DNA of 64,000 nucleotides from Mytilus trossulus (Eukaryota). How positions within the stretch are numbered: position 1 is the stretch's first letter; every line of letters starts with the position of its first letter. A model generated the notes under the pieces. That model was given only the letters and a program-made list of their open reading frames with translations, searched no databases and was not told the DNA's origin. Of the stretch, positions 45,069-63,570 are shown piece after piece. The stretch is from the NCBI RefSeq assembly GCF_036588685.1, contig NC_086382.1, positions 71,052,001 through 71,116,000 on the forward strand. The letters are read 5' to 3'. The position numbers and the translations under genes are program-made.

Positions 45069-47624
45069 ATGCCGACGTTAGTTTACCTTATCATATCTTT
45101 GATTAATGTAACGGTATATGCAGATTGCTGTCGAATAGTACGACAAGATAATCAAACAATTGCAGATTGCACCAGACTTAAATTAAATGATGTTCCGATA
45201 GATTTACCATTGGATATAGTAGGTCTTGATCTGAGCTACAATCAAATATCGATTATTAAAAACAATGTCTTTGAATCTTTTTCAAATTTGACTACACTAA
45301 CGATGGATTTTAACAATCTTCATACCATACATGAAGATGTCTTTAAAGGTTTAAAACACTTACGATGGCTTTCAATGAATCACAATCACCTTAACATATC
45401 GTCAAAAATATTTGGACTTGTACTTAGACCGTTATTAGGTCTACAACACTTAGATATCAGATACAATATAAATAAAACGTTGAATAAAGAAGGACCTATT
45501 GTTTATCCCTACTTCGGAAACCTGACATATTTAACCAATTTATATATGGATCTTGCTCAAAAACCACTCTTTAAGTTAAGTGGATTAAAAAAACTGTTGC
45601 AACTTAAGACCATAAAATTTGCAAAATGTTATTTGAACCAGATGTCTAATGACACCTTGGTAGATTCACCATCAACCATTACTGCAATCTACTTTCACAG
45701 GTGTGTCGGTACAATAAAGATTGTAGAAGCAGATTTTTTAAAGCCGTTTCCTTTACTTCAGATTTTAAGTATCGATGGAGCAGATGTGCCGTTAGAAGAT
45801 GCTTTAAAACTTCTTCAACCTTTTTTGCAGAAAAACTTGACCTCTATCACTTTCAAAGGGATTGTATCAAGTAATCCTGTGTTTATTACCTGTGAAATGG
45901 TTAAATATTTGCAGCGTATTTGTGTAAAAACTCTTGTTATAGCAAAATGTAATATTGTAGGATATGAGGAAAAGTCTCTACTAACATTTGATTATCCTGA
46001 ATGTCTAGAAAATATTGTACTCTCAGGCAACCGATTTTCAATAGCACTTGGATCTCATTTCACGGATCTGGTAGTATTAATGAAGAAAGCAATAAATATA
46101 AGATATTTTGACTTATCGTATAATGCTATTAATTTCAACAATATTGAATACTGCAATTTGAACGTACTTGAAAATCCTTTTTATAGAAAAGAAGTATATA
46201 TCGAAGGCTGCAAAATTAAAACTGGAACTGACAATGGAATTGAAATTTACAACTCAGAATTTTTGAACTCTCAAATAGTTAATGAATCAAAAGTTACAAT
46301 AGCTTTGCCTGCAAAGCTCACATTTCTACGAGTATCCCATTACATGACATCATATACTGAGACAGAACAAAAGTTAATTATAACTAATGCAAGTAATCTC
46401 AGATATTTAGATTTCTCGTACTGGCAGATTAAGCAGTTTCCTGAAATATATTCTGAGACTCCTTTTAATGTTAAATACATGGACATTTCTGGACTTAATG
46501 CAAGTATTCTAATTCATGAGACGTCAATACCGGTTTTTCAAAATGTCCAGACCGCTATTTTGAAAAATGCAATGCTGGGTCTAACAATTGGAAAGAATGG
46601 CAAAGTCTTTCAACTATTTCCGGCCGTAGCAAAACTAGATATATCATATAACAACTTATGGTATCTAGATAAAGATGCCTTTGAAACAAACGTAAACTTG
46701 TCAAATGTCAATATTGCACACAATTTACTGCAAGCTATACCTATAGCCGTGTTAGATGTGCCTAACTTAAGTAAACTGGATATAAGTTACAACCGCCTTC
46801 AAACAATAAATAAAACATTTAGAGATTGGATGGATGTGAAAAGTTATGGAGGAATATTTCATTTGTCGATAGAAGGAAACAGTCTTAAATGTACTTGCGA
46901 CACGTCAGATTTTATAAGGTGGATTTTCAGCACAGATGTCGTTTTTGATCGGGTCAATAAAAATTTCAGCTGCACACTGACGAATGGATCAGAAAGTAAC
47001 ACGGTGGTTATCTACACACGATTTCACGAACATTTTGGCAACTGCAATAACAAAAATTGGTTGCGCCTAGGAATAGGACTTCTTGTTGCATTCGTCGTGG
47101 TGACTGTTCCGTTGGCAGTGATTTTTAATTTCCGATGGAAAATAACTTTTTGGATATATCGTAACTTTAAAAGAGTTGTAGCAGACAGATTAGAAAGAAA
47201 ATTTAATTATGACATTTACTTGTCATATGCTGATGACATGCTTCAGTGGGTTCAAGGTGATTTTCTTCAGAGAATAGAGACGTCGTGGCACATGAAAGTA
47301 TGCGTGGAAGACCGCGATTTCAAACTTGGAGTGCCGAAAGCAGACGAAATAGCAAATGCTATAGCTGGCAGCAAACATGTTATATTTATCATGTCTGAGT
47401 CGTACAAAGATAACGAGTGGAACAAATTTGTAATCGAAAGAGTCACGTTCGAAAAATGCAGAAATTACTTACAAAAAATAATAATAGTAGTAAAACAAGC
47501 GTCAGTTAATAGTGTTCCACACGAGTTAGACGGCATTCTACAATATGTCACTATAATAAACTGGGCTGACAACGAGACTGGCTGGGACAAACTGCGCATG
47601 TCATTGTTCACTGATTCCTTTTAA
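45069..47624 (+). CDS. Toll-like receptor A (single-cysteine-cluster type; signal peptide, LRR-NT, LRRs, LRR-CT, TM, TIR), intronless CDS, 851 aa
   Basis: 851-aa ORF with hydrophobic N-terminus, LxxLDLSYNxI repeats, LRR-CT (GNSLKCTCD...C...C), TM LGIGLLVAFVVVTVPLAVIF, TIR box1 YDIYLSY and box2 CVEDRDF. Confidence 0.95.
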   Translation: MPTLVYLIISLINVTVYADCCRIVRQDNQTIADCTRLKLNDVPIDLPLDIVGLDLSYNQISIIKNNVFESFSNLTTLTMDFNNLHTIHEDVFKGLKHLRWLSMNHNHLNISSKIFGLVLRPLLGLQHLDIRYNINKTLNKEGPIVYPYFGNLTYLTNLYMDLAQKPLFKLSGLKKLLQLKTIKFAKCYLNQMSNDTLVDSPSTITAIYFHRCVGTIKIVEADFLKPFPLLQILSIDGADVPLEDALKLLQPFLQKNLTSITFKGIVSSNPVFITCEMVKYLQRICVKTLVIAKCNIVGYEEKSLLTFDYPECLENIVLSGNRFSIALGSHFTDLVVLMKKAINIRYFDLSYNAINFNNIEYCNLNVLENPFYRKEVYIEGCKIKTGTDNGIEIYNSEFLNSQIVNESKVTIALPAKLTFLRVSHYMTSYTETEQKLIITNASNLRYLDFSYWQIKQFPEIYSETPFNVKYMDISGLNASILIHETSIPVFQNVQTAILKNAMLGLTIGKNGKVFQLFPAVAKLDISYNNLWYLDKDAFETNVNLSNVNIAHNLLQAIPIAVLDVPNLSKLDISYNRLQTINKTFRDWMDVKSYGGIFHLSIEGNSLKCTCDTSDFIRWIFSTDVVFDRVNKNFSCTLTNGSESNTVVIYTRFHEHFGNCNNKNWLRLGIGLLVAFVVVTVPLAVIFNFRWKITFWIYRNFKRVVADRLERKFNYDIYLSYADDMLQWVQGDFLQRIETSWHMKVCVEDRDFKLGVPKADEIANAIAGSKHVIFIMSESYKDNEWNKFVIERVTFEKCRNYLQKIIIVVKQASVNSVPHELDGILQYVTIINWADNETGWDKLRMSLFTDSF

Positions 47625-51200: not shown

Positions 51201-52046
51201 CAATATAAAAACTTTAGGATCGTGGATGGCGGCCAAGGTTAATTTTGCCAAAAACGATTAAAATTTTGGAAAAAAGTGACCAATAGGCAGGAAATGAAAT
51301 AAAAAACAAACATGGAAAATGTGTTGAAATTTTTAGACTTTGCCCTTTTGTGGTTAATTAAATAGTTCTAGTGGAAAGTTTTCAATGTTGGCCCTTGTAT
51401 GTACCATCCCTCGCCCCATATCGGCCCTTGGCTAAAGCTTCGGGCTGACATGGGAGAGAATATGAAAAAGATAATGTGATAATCTATTATTATCCTCTGT
51501 GTATTGAATGTTTCGATTTTTTTCTCATAATAAAAATGATTGTATGGGTTAAAACAGTACAATAACCTATTAGCTTTAGTTTTGATGACTTGAGATTTCG
51601 TAGATTTAAGAAAATCACAAAAATCACGAACAAGAAAATTGAATGCAGGAAGACCCTAATCAAAATACAAAAATCAAATGCTCAAACTCACCAGACGAAT
51701 GGATAACAACTGTCATATTCCTGACTAGGTACATGCATTTTCTTTATGTAGAAGATGGTAGATTGACCCTAGTTTAAAACCTAGCTTAACCTCTCGCTTA
51801 CAAACAATGATGTAATTTGATCAAAGATGGACTGAAAAGTATTAAAAAATATATATTTAGAAGTATTTTTTATTTCATAAATGATTGTTATTAAGTCATG
51901 TCTATTCACCAATGCTTTAGTAAGTGTAACTGAGTACGGATTATCAATCATGATCAAAGTAGTTCTGATTAAGTCGACTAGTATAAATACAGATCTAAGC
52001 AATTGTACCACCACAATAGGGTTAAAATCGTCAAACCTCAGTTATC

Positions 52047-53650
52047 ATGGCTATGATAACTTTTCTGTTGTTGACCTTTGTCGGATCTGCTTTTTGCAGT
52101 AGCCGAAGAGGGTACAGTGTTGGATACGGAGGTGATGGCGGCAGCGGTGGTGGTGGTGTTGGTGGTGGCAGTGGTGGCGGAGGATGACATTACTGTTGGG
52201 AGGAGGAGGCCTAGGAGAAGGAACAGGAGGAAGGGAAGGAGGAGGAAAAGGAGGTCAGTTAGAATTAGAATAATCCTTGTTCTAATTGCAATTACAGCAA
52301 AGTAACTCTAAAGTGTTTATCAGGAGCAATGTTCCGAACATTTAATTAGGTTAAGCATATGTAAAAGTAAGTATAATACAAACGCATAATGTAATAAGTA
52401 GCGAGCAAAAATCAAACGTTTTGGTTTAAGACTGGTCAATCAGCTTCATACATTTACAAACTATTTCACCTTGAAATTTAAATTTAAATTTTAACATTTT
52501 CCAAGGATATGGTTCAGGATATGGTGGTGGTAGCTACGGAGACTATAGTGTTGGGTATGGTGGCAGTGGTGGCGGACGATTTGGATCAAGTGGTAGTAGT
52601 GGACTATTGGTTATAGGAGGAGGGGAGGAGGAGGAGGAGGAGGAGGAGGAGGAGGAGGAGGGGAGGTAAGATCACATTAACGTAATGCTCCATGACTTTA
52701 ATCAAACGTTCTGTCTAAACTCTTTCATCAGCGTAATACATTGAATTTACAACTGTATTCTATATCATCATAAAGTTAACATTTTTACCTTTTATTTCTA
52801 GTATTTGATGTCTATGCGTGACCTGCAAAACATGGGCGGTATTATTTAAACATGTGTTTAGGTTTTTTATCCATTCTTTGAACGTATCATACGACCAGAA
52901 ATGCTACTGCAATCATAAAATCTCCTCAAAGGAAGGTAAATGATTTTTTATTGCCGTTCTATGTCGATACACTAATAAAAAAAAACATTCTAAGATTATA
53001 ATTACATGTATATGTGTATTTGTGATCTTTCATTACAGATGGGAGAGTGTGGTGTACCTGTCGTTCAGGACAATGTCTCAAAGGAGAATTTCTTTTAGAC
53101 AAGTATTGCAGACTTACCCCACTATTTCCAGGGAAATGGGGTCCATGCTGCAAGGTGTTACCAGACAGTGTAACGAGCCGTAGTTACGGTGGAATAGATG
53201 GTACGGCTGGAGCGGGAGCTGGAGGCGCAGGTGAAATAAGTGGCGGAGCTGTATATGTAGCTAGATATGATGGAGGATCTGGATATGGGGGCGGATCTGG
53301 TTATGGTGGAGGATCTGTATATGGTGGAGGATCTGTTTATGGAGGAGGATCTGGATATGGGGGAGGATCTGTTTATGGAGGAGGATCTGGATAAGGGGGA
53401 GGATCTGTTTATGGAGGAGGATCTGGATATTGGTGGAGGATCTGGATATTGGGGCGGATCTGGTTATGGGGTAGAATCTGGGTATGGAGGTGGATCTGGA
53501 TACGGTGGTCCCAGTGGTGGATACGGCGATGGCCCTGCATATATAGTCTTGTCAGGTGGAGGTGCCGGGGGAGGTTCCGGAGGAGGTTCCGGTGGAGGTT
53601 CCGGTGGAGGTTCTGGGTCACGCGGAAAAGGAAAATCATACTATCTTTAG
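52047..53650 (+). pseudogene. Secreted Gly/Tyr-rich (shematrin-like) protein gene with an internal 6-Cys defensin-like module; frame disrupted (pseudogene or assembly errors)
   Basis: TATAAA 51982-51987; signal peptide MAMITFLLLTFVGSAFC from 52047. Exons 52047-52253, 52506-52665, 53039-53650 with GT-AG ends. GGGSGY/GGGSVY repeats, basic-Tyr tail RGKGKSYYL*, AATAAA 53707-53712. Lesions: frameshift with TGA at 52185-52187, frame slip in the GGA tract 52622-52665, TAA at 53392-53394, extra base near 53431. Confidence 0.75.
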
Positions 53651-56600
53651 TTTGACAGCACTTACCTAGCTTAGAAAAAAATATTATTTTCAGTATGTAA
53701 TACTACAATAAAACATATAGTTATGCAGAATGCTTCTTAATAAGCAAGGGCATTTCATAAAATTTATTAAAATATGGTGTTTATATTCACGATTAATACT
53801 TATGCTCGTACATGTAAAACTATACTGACTTCCTACACAGTAGTATGTTTTTTCGCAGAAACTGCCTTAACAGAGTTTAAGGAGAACAAAATAAAATGAC
53901 ACTCTGTAAATATTTTGGAAACCATCACTAATACGATGTGTCTATGTCTAAACTAACTGGTACAATTAATTTACCACGTCATAAATTGTGGCTTCACATC
54001 TATTTCGTCTATTTGCGAAGTAACGTGGTGGCCTATTCCTAGTGCTGCGGCGAAGTCTGAAAAGACGCATAGTTAGGGAAAAAAGGCACCTGTAAAAATC
54101 AAAACAAATATAATCAGCTTATTTGGCAGTCGTTTTCGGCCTCACAAAGACAAAGACTGTCGTAGATTAACTGTTACTGGTGCATAAACAAACTAAAGAT
54201 AAAACAAAAAGGTCAGATACTATTTAACTTTAAAAATTAAACTCCATGACGTTGTTGCTCTAAGCTGCTTCATGTAGAAATGAATTCATTTTGACACTTA
54301 TTTTTCGAGATGTTAACGTCTATGAATTTTATGTATAATTAAACCAAGTGTACCCGTCCCCAGACACAGCCATTTATTACTGGATCTAGACAGTTCTCCA
54401 ATGTTAATGTGAACGCACACAGTCTTGCTTTGAACAGTTTCCAATGCATGTGATACCTGTTAGTTCGTATCTATACTTCGTAGGATTATTCATATGCGTT
54501 TAATTTCGCGCTTTGTTTAGAAATTTGGCACTAATCAAAATTCATTTGACCTATGATGATTTTCTTTTAAAAATTAAAATGTGCGATCATTTATTAGACT
54601 TAACAGCGAAGCTTTGGGAGGACTTAATACGTATACATCCGATTGTGTTCAGTGTGTATCTACACAATCTAACGTCTTCAACATTCACATTCACACTTGT
54701 GTCATGTTATAGGATAATCTGGATAACGATAACATTATTGGTTTTGTTCTCAAAAACTTGTATTACTCATGTTGAGTCGCATGTGCTGCGTTTTTATAAC
54801 AGTTTACTTACCTTCAGAAATATTATCATTTATTTTAAAGTGACATTCAACTGAATCATTAACTCTAAATTATATGTGATATTTAAATCGTTAACTCACT
54901 CTAATGTATTGATCAATATGTAAATATTATCATTGTTCAAAAATTCTTTAATAATGCTTGCAAAATCTTCGTTAAAAAAGAAATAAAGTTATTATATTAT
55001 TCATATAACAATATTTTTATTTAATAGGTAATGATTGTCGAAAAAAATATATCATCTAAAGAAATTAGATAAAGAAAATTTAAACAATTATTTGTACTTC
55101 GACATAAAAAAAAACCTACATGTAAGTCTATCTATCTGTATGGTTAAAAAAATAACTTAAATTAAAAAAACAAGTTCTCATACTGTACTCCTCACAATTG
55201 TACCAACTATAAATATAAACAACAGAGGTTTATTGTTAAGATAAGTCTTTCATTTCTAAATAATGGCAAAATTAAAGAAGGAAAAGCAAGAATTGATATA
55301 ATTCCAGTATCTATTTATACAAAAAGCAAACAACGTATTTCATCCAGGAAGTATCAGATACTTTATTGTATTCAAATCCGAACTATAACGATTTAAACTT
55401 CCACTATGAGTCCTGTTTTATAACGGGGGTTCACCTGAAATATTTTATACGGAAACCAAACATTTGTTTTATAACCTGATACTATAGCAGTTTAAATATA
55501 GCCTATAGCTACTTCTTTGTCAGGAGGTTGGACATATTTAAACAATAAAAAGAAAATGTACCTTTTCTCTTGAACAAGCTTAAGTTAAAGAATAATCAAA
55601 GTGACACGATTTTGTCAGTCCAAATATTGCCCCCAAATTTAAATATGTCAAACAACTTAAACATAAAAATGCTTTGCATAATCGAATAAAAAGATAAAAT
55701 CATTACGCGATCAATACTTCTTTGTATAGTTGATTCAAAACTGTGTTAAAAAACTGTTAAATTTATATGTGTTCGAAAATCAGGTAGAACTAAAGGCAAA
55801 TGACTTCATTCCTTAAGCCATGATCCACGTGAGTTAATTTTCTATTTTTTATTTAACGTTATTACACGGAGAAAACCGTTTTTGATATAAACTATTCTTT
55901 ATTGGCTGTACAGTTGAAATGTTCGAAATTCATTTATCAATCTAAACGTATGATTTAATTTTTTTTTAATTTTTAAATGCCTGATTAAACAAAGCTATAA
56001 ATATAAAATTTGGAGGTGTGATACAATTGCCAAAAAAGACAATAATCTTCTAAAGTACACATGAAGTGGATGTGACCAATTATAGATAAACGTATGTACT
56101 TCAATAATGAGAAAACAACATACCGTATTATCGGTTGCCCGACATGACATGTTCGAGTTGATCTAAGGCTCCGTGATTACCTATAATGATTTACTTTTAG
56201 AAATTGTGAGAAGGATTGAGAGTTTCCTTTTTTTGCACTCATTCCATAGTGATATATCAAGGAAAATCGTCGTGGATGATTCATCAAAAGAATGAACTGT
56301 CGTTCTGGAATAAATTTATTCCATATAATTATATAAAAATTGTAAATAAAGGCAACAGCAGTATACCGCTGTTCAAAACACATAAATCCATGTCTAAAAA
56401 AACAAAACCGGGATAACAAAGTAAAACTGAGGGAAATGCATTAAATATAAGAGGAGAACAACGACACAACATTTAAATGTAACACACACAGAAACGGACT
56501 AAGCATTAGACAAAGTATAAACGTCCTATGAGAATAACAAATATAACAAATATAACATCAAAGACGTTCCTCAACGGATTGCAATATTTTGTATATGTAT

Positions 56601-61008: not shown

Positions 61009-63570
61009 ATGAAACATTTGGCTAAACTGGTATTTTACTTGCTCATGCTGTGTTGTCATTCTGGATCTTCTAAAACATGTCGAATGAAAGAAAGAAACAC
61101 TATTGCAGACTGCACAAAGAGTGGACTACAAGACATACCTAAATACTTGCCACTGAACATATCAGAGCTTGATCTAAGTCATAATAAAATATCGTTCCTT
61201 AGAAACAATGCATTCCAACGATTTGAGAATTTGACGGTATTAAAGCTTGATTATAACAATTTAGAGAACATTGACACAGAATCCTTCAATGGTCTCTCCA
61301 AACTCAGATGGCTTTCAATGGAGAAAAATAAACTTGATATTTCATCACGTGATTTCAAACATGTATTTAAACCTCTGAATAATTTGAACCATTTAGACAT
61401 TAGATACAATATGGATAAATTGGTAACCAAAGCTACAGTAGAATATCCATTTTTCGGTTACATGTCTAACCTGACAACTCTATATATGGACCTGGCTGAA
61501 AACCCTGTTTTCAATTCGAGTGGTTTTGAGTTGATGCTTAACCTTCAAACTGTTAGATTTGAAAAATGCTATTTAAAACAAATGCTTAACGACACTTTGA
61601 TAAACTTGCCACGAAATATTATCTCAATTTATTTTTATAGGTGTTATTCGTTTATATCGTTTGTAGAACCTAACTTTTTAAGACCTTTTCCTGTACTGAA
61701 GGAACTAACTATGTTTAAAGTTCGTGTCCGATTCGACGATGCATTGAAACTTTTGTACCCGTTCACTGGCAAGGAAATGACATCGATAAGCTTTATACAA
61801 GTAATTGGGTTTGCAGCTAAGCCAGTCTTCATTACTCGTGATATGGTGAAATATCTAAAAGAAATTTGCGTTCAAACATTAGTTCTAGGAGAAAGTGAAA
61901 TAGTTGGATATGAGGAAAATTCTTTACTTGCGTTTAAATATCCACAATGTTTGGAATATGTTGTATTTTCAGGCAATCGGTTTTCACTGGGAATAGAAAA
62001 TCATGAAATGGAACTCATAGTTGTTGCAATGAAAGCAACAAATTTGAAGTACTTTGACTTATCGTACAATGCCATTAATTTCAATGATGTGACGTACTGT
62101 AATATTGAGGCTCTTCGAAATGTTTCTTATAGAAACGAAATATACAGCAATGGGTGTGAAGTTAAAACGAAAGTAGCTGAACAATATCAAATTTCAAATT
62201 CAAATCTTCGATATTCTGACATGACTGAAGAAATAAATATAACTGTTTCGATGCCTGCAAACCTAACCTTTTTCCGACTATCGCATTATATGACATCATA
62301 TAAAGAGTACGGACTAAATTTCTTTGTAAAAAACTCAGCTACTTTGAGATACCTGGATTTGTCGTACTGGAAAGTTTCATATTTTCCAAATATATACTCC
62401 GTCACTCCATTCAACATAAAATATTTGGACTTAACTGGTGTCAGCTCAATGCTTTTTATCCACAAATCATCAGTGCCTATATTTCAAAATATCGAAACTG
62501 CAATTATGAAGGATACAATGATTGATGAAACCATTAGAAGAAATGGTAATGTATTTAAACTATTCCCGACTGTTGAAAAGTTCGATATATCATACAACAA
62601 TGTCTTATATCTGGATGATGATTCTTTTTTGTTGAATACAAGACTATCGAACCTGAACATGGCAAACAATTTACTATCAACAATTCCAAAGGCAGTGATG
62701 AGTTTAGCGCACCTTAATAGATTGGATATCAGATATAATCGAATTCAGACAATTGGACAAACATTCAGAACATGGCTTGATTCGAAAAGTGAAAGTAGAA
62801 AGTTTCTTCTACTTATAAAAGGTAATAGTTTCAAATGTACGTGTGATACATCCGATTTCATTCAGTGGATATTCAACACGAAAGTTGATTTCGATCAAAA
62901 CAAAAAACGATACAATTGTACTTTGACTAACGGAACAGAAACCAATACATTGTTGGTTTATAGTCGGTTTCATGACCATTTCGGTAACTGTGATAGCAAA
63001 ACTTGGTTACGTTTAGGTATTGGCCTCATCGTTTCCTTTTTTGGTTTGACTATAATTATTGCCGTTATCTTTAACTTTCGATGGAAAATCACATATTGGG
63101 TATACCAAAATTTTAGGAAGGCAGTAGAAAAAAGGTTGGAAAGAAAGTTTAGATATGACATCTACTTGACATATGCTGATGACAGAATTCAATGGGTTCG
63201 TGAAGTTCTCCTGCCGCGTATAGAAAATTCATGGAACATGACCGTCTGCATAGAAGATCGGGATTTCGAGCTTGGAATTTCGCAGGCAGATGCAATAGCA
63301 AATGCCATTGCGGGAAGTAAACATGCAATTTTCATAATTTCAGATATATACAACGATAAATCCTGGAGTCAGTATGAAATTGAAAGAGTAAAATATGAAA
63401 AATGTTCAAATTATTTGCAAAAAACTGTTGTTATTGTAAAAGATGCAAATGTGTCTTCAATTTTACACGAATTAGACAACATTTTACAACATTTGATAAT
63501 AATAGATTGGACTAATGATGAAACTGGTTGGGATAAATTACGTATGGCATTGTTTACGGAAGCTTTTTGA
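61009..63570 (+). CDS. Toll-like receptor B, tandem paralogue of the 45-kb TLR, intronless CDS, 853 aa
   Basis: 853-aa ORF colinear with TLR A over its whole length (LDLSHNKI, FDLSYNAINF, GNSFKCTCDTSDFI, WLRLGIGL, YDIYLTY, CIEDRDF, NETGWDKLRM-like end). Splice acceptor (tttctttgacag, ending 60933) upstream of the ATG. Confidence 0.95.
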   Translation: MKHLAKLVFYLLMLCCHSGSSKTCRMKERNTIADCTKSGLQDIPKYLPLNISELDLSHNKISFLRNNAFQRFENLTVLKLDYNNLENIDTESFNGLSKLRWLSMEKNKLDISSRDFKHVFKPLNNLNHLDIRYNMDKLVTKATVEYPFFGYMSNLTTLYMDLAENPVFNSSGFELMLNLQTVRFEKCYLKQMLNDTLINLPRNIISIYFYRCYSFISFVEPNFLRPFPVLKELTMFKVRVRFDDALKLLYPFTGKEMTSISFIQVIGFAAKPVFITRDMVKYLKEICVQTLVLGESEIVGYEENSLLAFKYPQCLEYVVFSGNRFSLGIENHEMELIVVAMKATNLKYFDLSYNAINFNDVTYCNIEALRNVSYRNEIYSNGCEVKTKVAEQYQISNSNLRYSDMTEEINITVSMPANLTFFRLSHYMTSYKEYGLNFFVKNSATLRYLDLSYWKVSYFPNIYSVTPFNIKYLDLTGVSSMLFIHKSSVPIFQNIETAIMKDTMIDETIRRNGNVFKLFPTVEKFDISYNNVLYLDDDSFLLNTRLSNLNMANNLLSTIPKAVMSLAHLNRLDIRYNRIQTIGQTFRTWLDSKSESRKFLLLIKGNSFKCTCDTSDFIQWIFNTKVDFDQNKKRYNCTLTNGTETNTLLVYSRFHDHFGNCDSKTWLRLGIGLIVSFFGLTIIIAVIFNFRWKITYWVYQNFRKAVEKRLERKFRYDIYLTYADDRIQWVREVLLPRIENSWNMTVCIEDRDFELGISQADAIANAIAGSKHAIFIISDIYNDKSWSQYEIERVKYEKCSNYLQKTVVIVKDANVSSILHELDNILQHLIIIDWTNDETGWDKLRMALFTEAF

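Follow-up and report, generated by a model that had tools for sequence, protein, structure and literature searches.

Mammalian alpha-defensins, such as HNP1, are built on the cysteine array C-x-C-x4-C-x9-C-x9-CC, with an Arg-Glu salt bridge and, in the beta-bulge, an invariant Gly two residues before Cys4. To our knowledge, alpha-defensins occur only in mammals and are regarded as a late mammalian invention. In the genes of big- and beta-defensins, the Cys-rich exon is directly preceded by a phase-1 intron. The alpha-defensin disulfides connect Cys1-6, Cys2-4, and Cys3-5; in trans-defensins, three disulfides hold three antiparallel strands together, and two of these disulfides point opposite ways from the last strand; and big defensins are present in bivalves (PMC7203481). 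A different set of proteins, the shematrins and KRMPs of pearl oysters, are described as secreted; they carry GnY or GnX repeats, and their C-terminus has a short basic signature whose last residue is Tyr (PMC3896809). The present analysis concerns a 64,000-nucleotide stretch of DNA from the mussel Mytilus trossulus (contig NC_086382.1, positions 71,052,001 to 71,116,000; hereafter, the window), in which a first-pass annotation had pointed to a gene for a Gly-rich secreted protein with an embedded six-Cys module resembling alpha-defensins. The module was found to be a conserved domain, and we favor, with moderate confidence, the reading that it is a convergent alpha-defensin-like knot in a mussel family (at least 56 copies) of Gly-rich secreted shell-matrix proteins, of which the window carries a disabled copy.

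Conservation of the six-Cys module in a gene family

The six-Cys module lies on the + strand at 53053-53151, and translation confirmed both the peptide and the spacing first proposed for it: 33 residues from Cys1 to Cys6, in the order C-x-C-x4-C-x10-C-x12-CC, with a Trp codon (53050-53052) directly before Cys1 and a Lys after Cys6. The residues that had been likened to those of alpha-defensins were likewise present, including (i) Arg right after Cys2; (ii) Gly-Glu at the third and fourth positions after Cys3; and (iii) Trp three residues before the CC pair. The absence of the bulge Gly was also borne out, as no Gly stands two residues before Cys4. The core from Trp to CC carries a net charge of +3.

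Sequence searches were performed by exon, using the window from 53038 to 53175, 53184, or 53388 and the last exons of paralogues. As a lone query, the module gave 54 six-frame matches in the genome, while a profile derived from 31 distinct copies gave 56 matches at E ≤ 0.001; the window module scored against this profile with an E-value of 1.6e-22. All but one of the copies (55/56) form four arrays within the 3.08-12.71 Mb interval of contig C5, and the remaining one is the window copy on contig C10. When the 31 distinct copies were aligned, the Trp and all six Cys residues were invariant (31/31), and every copy followed the array C-x-C-x3/4-C-x10-C-x11/12-CC. Residues conserved in at least 90% of the copies included the Thr after Cys1, the Leu and two Pro residues of the Cys4-Cys5 loop, the Thr before CC, and one Thr of the extension. 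The ratio of nonsynonymous to synonymous substitution rates (dN/dS) over the module had a median of 0.43 and was below 1 in all usable pairs (263/263); for the window copy compared with its nearest paralogues, it was 0.17-0.31 at a dS of about 0.5. Net charge of the module ranged from +1 to +7 across the family. Based on the 56 genome matches, the invariant Trp and Cys residues, and the dN/dS below 1, the module is a real conserved domain, far beyond chance. The window gene has the features of this Mytilus family, namely the Trp and six-Cys module, the L-x-P..P loop, the extension, and a signal-peptide exon at 52047; the exception is a Pro at codon 53143-53145, where at least 90% of the copies have Thr.

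The subfamilies were found to share a common plan, in which an exon for a signal peptide and low-complexity sequence precedes another that has the module at its beginning, then a low-complexity tail, and finally a short basic/Tyr end (e.g., RKGSTY, GKKSY, and GKGYY, and in the window GKGKSYYL before the TAG). The acceptor before the module was assigned to phase 1 by script at 27 of 38 loci; the remaining 11 show the same ACAG|G site by eye, where the script had chosen a later AG or none. Tails of the Gly/Tyr type belong to copies at 5.17-5.32 Mb of C5, which are the closest to the window (76-82% identity over the module), while GGGI/GGGL tails were detected at 5.65-5.74 Mb and Gly/Ile/Val/Ser tails at 12.6 Mb of the same contig. 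About 25 tandem copies at 3.82-4.15 Mb of C5 (L026, L028-L030, and L032-L040) have Tyr/Pro-rich repeats of the TYPGSTYP type (TYPGS) and a core charge of +5 to +7; the annotated orthologues of these TYPGS copies in M. edulis and M. galloprovincialis (P0004, P0005, and P0019) are all termed 'uncharacterized.' At the locus L015 (C5:5492109-5492558 region; L015:1492-2703, - strand), the module is followed by a 407-residue Gly/Asn last exon with GNGNGGG repeats and periodic GYGYV..KVGYGG, a composition that we take to be reminiscent of byssal thread-matrix proteins.

Protein databases were also searched for relatives. A word-based search with a paralogue last exon returned one match, P0001, a 182-residue protein of M. 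edulis. Scanning 1.84 billion protein representatives with a hidden Markov model returned 16 matches at E ≤ 0.001, of which 15 contain the module; P0017, an 895-residue internal repeat protein, was taken as a false match. No defensin and no Pinctada protein was among the profile matches from these 1.84 billion representatives. Ten clusters were looked up, and the seven with names were all from M. edulis or M. galloprovincialis, with three (from JGI, Logan, and ENA) having no names. Because one of the proteins, P0013, shares no more than 46-57% identity with any sequence of the genome, the family probably extends beyond this species. Two others have unusual layouts: P0030 (M. edulis, 226 aa) has two tandem modules, one with Phe in place of Cys5, and P0003 (322 aa) has an unrelated 200-residue N-terminus joined to the module; both appear to have arisen by merging or mis-splicing of gene models in the tandem arrays.

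The P0022 cluster holds 'Nacre Gly-rich protein 1' (AKQ70859.1, 158 aa), the only homologue tied to nacre. The tie is one of composition, as its 22.8% Gly, 9.5% Arg, and 8.2% Ser equal to the decimal the values given for a GRS-rich protein in a shell proteome paper; the two are thus considered the same protein. According to that paper (Gao et al. 2015, PMC4517812), the GRS-rich protein was found by proteomics in the acid-soluble nacre matrix of M. galloprovincialis and is one of those that have 'neither homology nor putative domains.' Nacre Gly-rich protein 1 belongs to the same family as the window gene: its signal peptide and Gly-rich block are followed by the six-Cys module and then by a tail of Gly, Ser, Arg, and Tyr. 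Over 60 residues, its module and that of the window are 58% identical, with one difference in the first 12 core residues; it differs in having Val for Glu and a different, shorter tail. No close copy of P0022 was detected in the assembly, where the best identity was 58-59% over the module and exon 1 had no match, which reflects either presence/absence variation or a species difference.

Predicted fold and sequence relationship to defensins

Structure prediction followed by fold search, the check proposed with the first-pass annotation, was positive: AlphaFold models of a window-type and a D-type module both matched alpha-defensins first, by Foldseek as well as by VIA-align. The window-type model (predicted local distance difference test [pLDDT] score of 70.1) has two long strands and a 2-residue bridge, and its best Foldseek match was cryptdin-4 (E 2.2; template modeling score [TMt] 0.70). 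Among the Foldseek matches listed for this model, every compact one was an alpha-defensin, and the others were antibody chains with a root mean square deviation (rmsd) of about 9 Å. The D-type model (pLDDT of about 70) has strands at 3-9, 17-25, and 28-39 and gave 25 Foldseek matches at E ≤ 10; all but one of those listed were alpha-defensins, including HD6 (E 0.21, probability 1.00, TMt 0.84). The models superpose on whole alpha-defensin chains with an rmsd of 1.0-1.7 Å over 30-32 residues at 26-38% identity, and it is only by this whole-chain superposition that a disulfide pairing is implied. Predicted template modeling (pTM) scores were 0.42-0.44, and the underlying alignment was shallow, comprising 31 sequences that all come from one genome. 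As far as a domain of 35 residues allows, the module is alpha-defensin-like by predicted structure.

Homology to defensins was not supported by the sequence searches, in which neither Pfam Defensin_1 nor the PDB profile gave a significant match. In detail, (i) Pfam hmmscan of the window exon and the 31 modules at E ≤ 10 identified no defensin family; (ii) PF00323 (Defensin_1) searched against the whole genome gave five matches below the cut-off, none of them at any module locus; (iii) the PDB profile search with the module gave 0 matches; and (iv) phmmer with an A-type module against PDB gave nothing. Matches of modules to the Pfam entries DUF5988 and Arb1 (E 0.07-0.3) were taken as chance. 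When a D-type module was compared by phmmer with 177,635 PDB sequences, the single match at E ≤ 10 was human Defensin-6 (E = 2), in an alignment that pairs the six Cys, two Arg, Glu, Ser, and Trp and places 3 gap positions in the defensin. The big defensin model PF14862 had no match in the genome at E ≤ 0.01, so that the module could not be set against any big defensin of the mussel itself.

Within the genome, the two residues of the putative Arg/Glu pair are kept or lost together. In 24 of the 31 genome copies, Cys2 is followed by Arg and the fourth position after Cys3 holds Glu, and both were replaced (by Ser and Gln) in the other 7; as all 7 belong to one subfamily, the double loss counts as one event. 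The pairing did not hold for the nacre homologue, in which the Arg is kept and the Glu is not. Database representatives with the full motif had Arg and Glu in 9/14, Ser and Gln in 4/14, and Arg and Val in 1/14, the last being from the nacre protein cluster. At the position of the bulge Gly, two residues before Cys4, none of the genome copies (0/31) or database representatives (0/14) has Gly, with Lys, Asn, Tyr, Arg, Ser, or Thr found instead.

The window copy and its counterparts in related mussels

The window gene and its module are organized as follows:
52047-53650, + strand: gene of a secreted Gly/Tyr-rich protein in three exons, the module opening the last exon
52047-52253, + strand: exon 1, with ATG, hydrophobic signal peptide, and first Gly-rich block; phase-1 end before GT at 52254
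52506-52665, + strand: exon 2 (middle), a Gly/Tyr block (GYGSGYGGGSYGDYSVGYGG...LLVIGGG), then a (GGA)n/(GAG)n microsatellite
53039-53650, + strand: exon 3, with the module, GGGSGY/GGGSVY repeats, an AYIVLSGGG...GGGS block, a basic-Tyr tail, and TAG at 53648-53650
53050-53184, + strand: conserved module, with Trp, Cys1-Cys6 (53053-53151), and the extension L-P-x-x-V-T

As first annotated, the module stands at an exon start between Gly-rich blocks: an AG acceptor was identified at 53037-53038, 11 nt 5′ of the Trp codon, forming a phase-1 intron junction, with the Gly-rich exons 1 and 2 upstream and repeats downstream. The annotated location between two Toll-like receptor (TLR) genes also holds, since the flanking open reading frames (45069-47624 and 61009-63570) both carry leucine-rich repeat and Toll/interleukin-1 receptor domains. 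As 55 of the 56 copies are elsewhere, on C5, this neighborhood is probably incidental. About 100 bp upstream of the ATG (51940-52046) can be aligned at 72-73% identity with the regions upstream of the C5 paralogues L004, L006, and L008. Because this promoter-proximal region and the introns came along, the window copy is considered a DNA-level duplicate and not a retrocopy.

Judged from its reading frames, the window gene is a disabled, dispersed copy that cannot make an intact protein in this individual. In exon 1, translation from the ATG stops at a TGA (52185-52187), beyond which the exon (LLLGGGG...KGG) is read in a different frame. The start frame and the end of exon 2 give no phase-1 junction of the kind that exon 3 requires; exon 2 is therefore taken to be damaged or skipped. 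Middle exons homologous to it are open in the paralogues L004 and L011. Exon 3 is interrupted twice, at 53392-53394 by a TAA and near 53430 by a +1 shift; beyond the shift, the tail typical of the family lies in frame 2. The locus was found in no sequencing run recorded as RNA.

The lesions were compared with Logan contigs of four DNA runs (X1-X4) aligned to 52000-53700, leaving out the microsatellite repeat at the end of exon 2 (52610-52671), where all Logan contigs break. Run X1 is from organism A (0.95 of words; possibly the assembly's own sample), X2 is from organism B, and X3 and X4 are from organism C. X1 was identical to the window wherever covered, including both frameshift sites. The contigs of X2, X3, and X4 were about 99% identical to the window through the introns, compared with only 73-84% for the C5 paralogues by BLAST, and thus represent the same locus and not these paralogues. 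All three have one extra base behind 52184, which gives a single open frame across exon 1. At 53430, one base is missing in X2 (47.6 of 83 depth) and X3 (16 of 19.3), which places exon 3 in frame, and each of these two runs also has a minor window-like contig at this site. The TAA site (53392-53394) was covered by one X4 contig only, which reads TAT, in a register made uncertain by a 19-base gap and a repeat joint. The codon at 53143-53145 encodes Thr in X3 and in one of the two X2 contigs, while X4 is as the window. Based on these comparisons, the lesions look recent and specific to a lineage or individual. An old, long-dead pseudogene was rejected because of the dN/dS of 0.17-0.31 and the nearly identical contigs from other organisms that are open at two lesion sites. 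In our reading, the window module was under constraint until recently.

Alternative readings and comparison with known systems

The economical reading of these results is convergence on the alpha-defensin architecture and not membership in the family, since no sequence homology was detected, the family is mussel-restricted, and alpha-defensins are reported only from mammals. Membership is further disfavored by the lack of a significant sequence match, the missing bulge Gly, the internal position of the module, and the mussel host. The analysis shows that the family exists and is conserved, that it has a secretion signal, that one member is located in nacre, and that the module has this predicted fold; the role in the shell is inferred. 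The proteins would be of the shematrin/KRMP type and belong to the framework of the shell matrix or periostracum, a structural role to which we commit because of the nacre localization of one homologue and the shematrin/KRMP-like architecture. Each protein has (i) a signal peptide, disordered Gly-rich arms of the Gly/Tyr, Gly/Ile/Leu, Gly/Asn, or Tyr/Pro kind, and a short tail of basic residues and Tyr; and (ii) one compact cationic six-Cys domain mid-protein, which in every case opens the last exon and is preceded by a phase-1 intron. According to the models, this domain is a beta-sheet of three strands, locked by disulfides, that can be superposed on mammalian alpha-defensins, with the Arg/Glu pair at alpha-defensin positions. 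The Gly/Tyr arms would make up a cross-linkable disordered matrix with a single folded node, the cationic knot, which may bind anionic matrix partners or mineral, or pair with itself via edge strands.

Several points weigh against this reading and in favor of a predictor artefact. The models are of moderate confidence (pLDDT of about 70, with pTM of 0.42-0.44 and a 31-sequence alignment from one genome), and AlphaFold may simply be recalling alpha-defensins from the C-x-C...CC pattern, in which case the real fold and disulfides would differ and the Arg/Glu pair would be coincidental. The loops of 10 and 11-12 residues are longer than those of the aligned defensins, and the sole sequence alignment contains gaps. 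In addition, the Trp before Cys1, the L-x-P...P loop, the Thr before CC, and the L-P-x-x-V-T extension are without alpha-defensin counterpart, the bulge Gly is absent, and the nacre homologue has Val for Glu. However, two models from subfamilies that are only 43% identical and differ in loop lengths had the same best matches in two aligners, Arg and Glu were lost together in the sole subfamily without them (7/7), and the sole PDB match by phmmer at E ≤ 10 was also an alpha-defensin with the six Cys aligned; an artefact of this kind is considered unlikely. Far less credible, to the point of being nearly dismissed, is a meaningless chance Cys pattern in a decayed low-complexity pseudogene. The window copy does have at least three disabling lesions, and its locus is in no RNA run, but 56 copies with invariant Cys and a dN/dS below 1 (0.17-0.31 for the window) contradict such a reading, as do the annotated proteins in two Mytilus species, one of them identified in nacre, and the near-identical contigs from related organisms that are open at two lesion sites.

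The module may instead be a true trans-defensin, with an exon that descends from an ancestor of the big/beta-defensin type, was shuffled into a Gly-rich matrix gene, and acts as an antimicrobial or by HD6-like self-assembly to protect shell, periostracum, or byssus. In common with big- and beta-defensins, the module has six Cys, the last two of them adjacent, and a sheet predicted to be three-stranded, and its Cys-rich exon lies immediately 3′ of a phase-1 intron. Phase-1 introns are, however, common beside exons of secreted proteins, which makes this likeness weak evidence. There was also no significant similarity to any defensin family, the big-defensin Pfam model without a genome match at E ≤ 0.01 allowed no comparison, and the position of Cys1 is of the alpha type and not of the beta/big type of invertebrates. 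Furthermore, 55 of the 56 copies are away from TLR genes, the sole member of known location is in nacre, and no antimicrobial, infection, or expression evidence was found; we regard this alternative as improbable. Still more doubtful is a genuine invertebrate trans-defensin whose alpha-type Cys array was reached independently of mammals from a big-defensin-type exon moved behind a phase-1 intron and which would lend the mussel shell-matrix or periostracum proteins a built-in activity, either antimicrobial or, as with HD6 and its nanonets, self-assembling. The overall probability that the module descends from such an exon is low.

No published description of the module or of its alpha-defensin likeness was found in a search that left most subscription journals and supplements outside. 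The domain is apparently undescribed, while the proteins are already in databases, mostly unnamed, with one in a shell proteome paper (PMC4517812). A mussel-restricted domain that has the Cys order and Arg/Glu positions of alpha-defensins, and a predicted fold within about 1 Å of HD6, would exemplify convergence on that architecture in a clear form or, with lower probability, point to deep ancestry. Its setting would also be unexpected, as the only folded node in a large family of disordered Gly-rich shell-matrix proteins. Were the trans-defensin alternative true, this would be a 56-gene structural family polymerized or armed by a defensin knot. The GRS-rich/Nacre Gly-rich proteins, domain-less in print, also gain a defined conserved domain, and the 49-position profile provides an annotation handle for about 56 mostly unnamed Mytilus genes. 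For the window itself the result is modest, a broken stray copy.

Among shell-matrix proteins, the mussel family is similar in kind to the shematrins and KRMPs in its Gly/Tyr repeats and short basic tail ending in Tyr. The GGGSGY/GGGSVY repeats and GKGKSYYL end of the window gene agree with the annotated shematrin-like scaffold with a basic-Tyr tail, and a homologue is a nacre protein identified by proteomics. The mussel tails are alike in kind to, and not identical with, the RKKKY-type motifs of shematrins and KRMPs. The six-Cys module is not common to the pearl oysters, with no Pinctada protein in the profile scan. Byssal thread-matrix proteins and 'periostracin' were considered as identities for the family, and no literature was found that ties them to the module; nothing relevant was found on Cys in KRMP basic domains or on Gly-rich proteins in two Mytilus mantle papers.

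When compared with alpha-defensins, the module shares the six-Cys order and a near-identical spacing (C-x-C start and CC end), the Arg after Cys2, the Glu four residues after Cys3, and a cationic core. It is unlike them in that (i) the Cys3-Cys4 and Cys4-Cys5 loops are longer, by 1-3 residues relative to the aligned chains; and (ii) it lacks the bulge Gly, has an invariant Trp ahead of Cys1, and is followed past CC by a conserved extension. In addition, the module is internal to a low-complexity protein of 110-500 residues and lies between low-complexity blocks in all of the full-length models, whereas the alpha-defensin is the C-terminal mature peptide of a prepropeptide. The host is a mussel and not a mammal, and the one located member of the family is in nacre, compared with the granules and Paneth cells of alpha-defensins.

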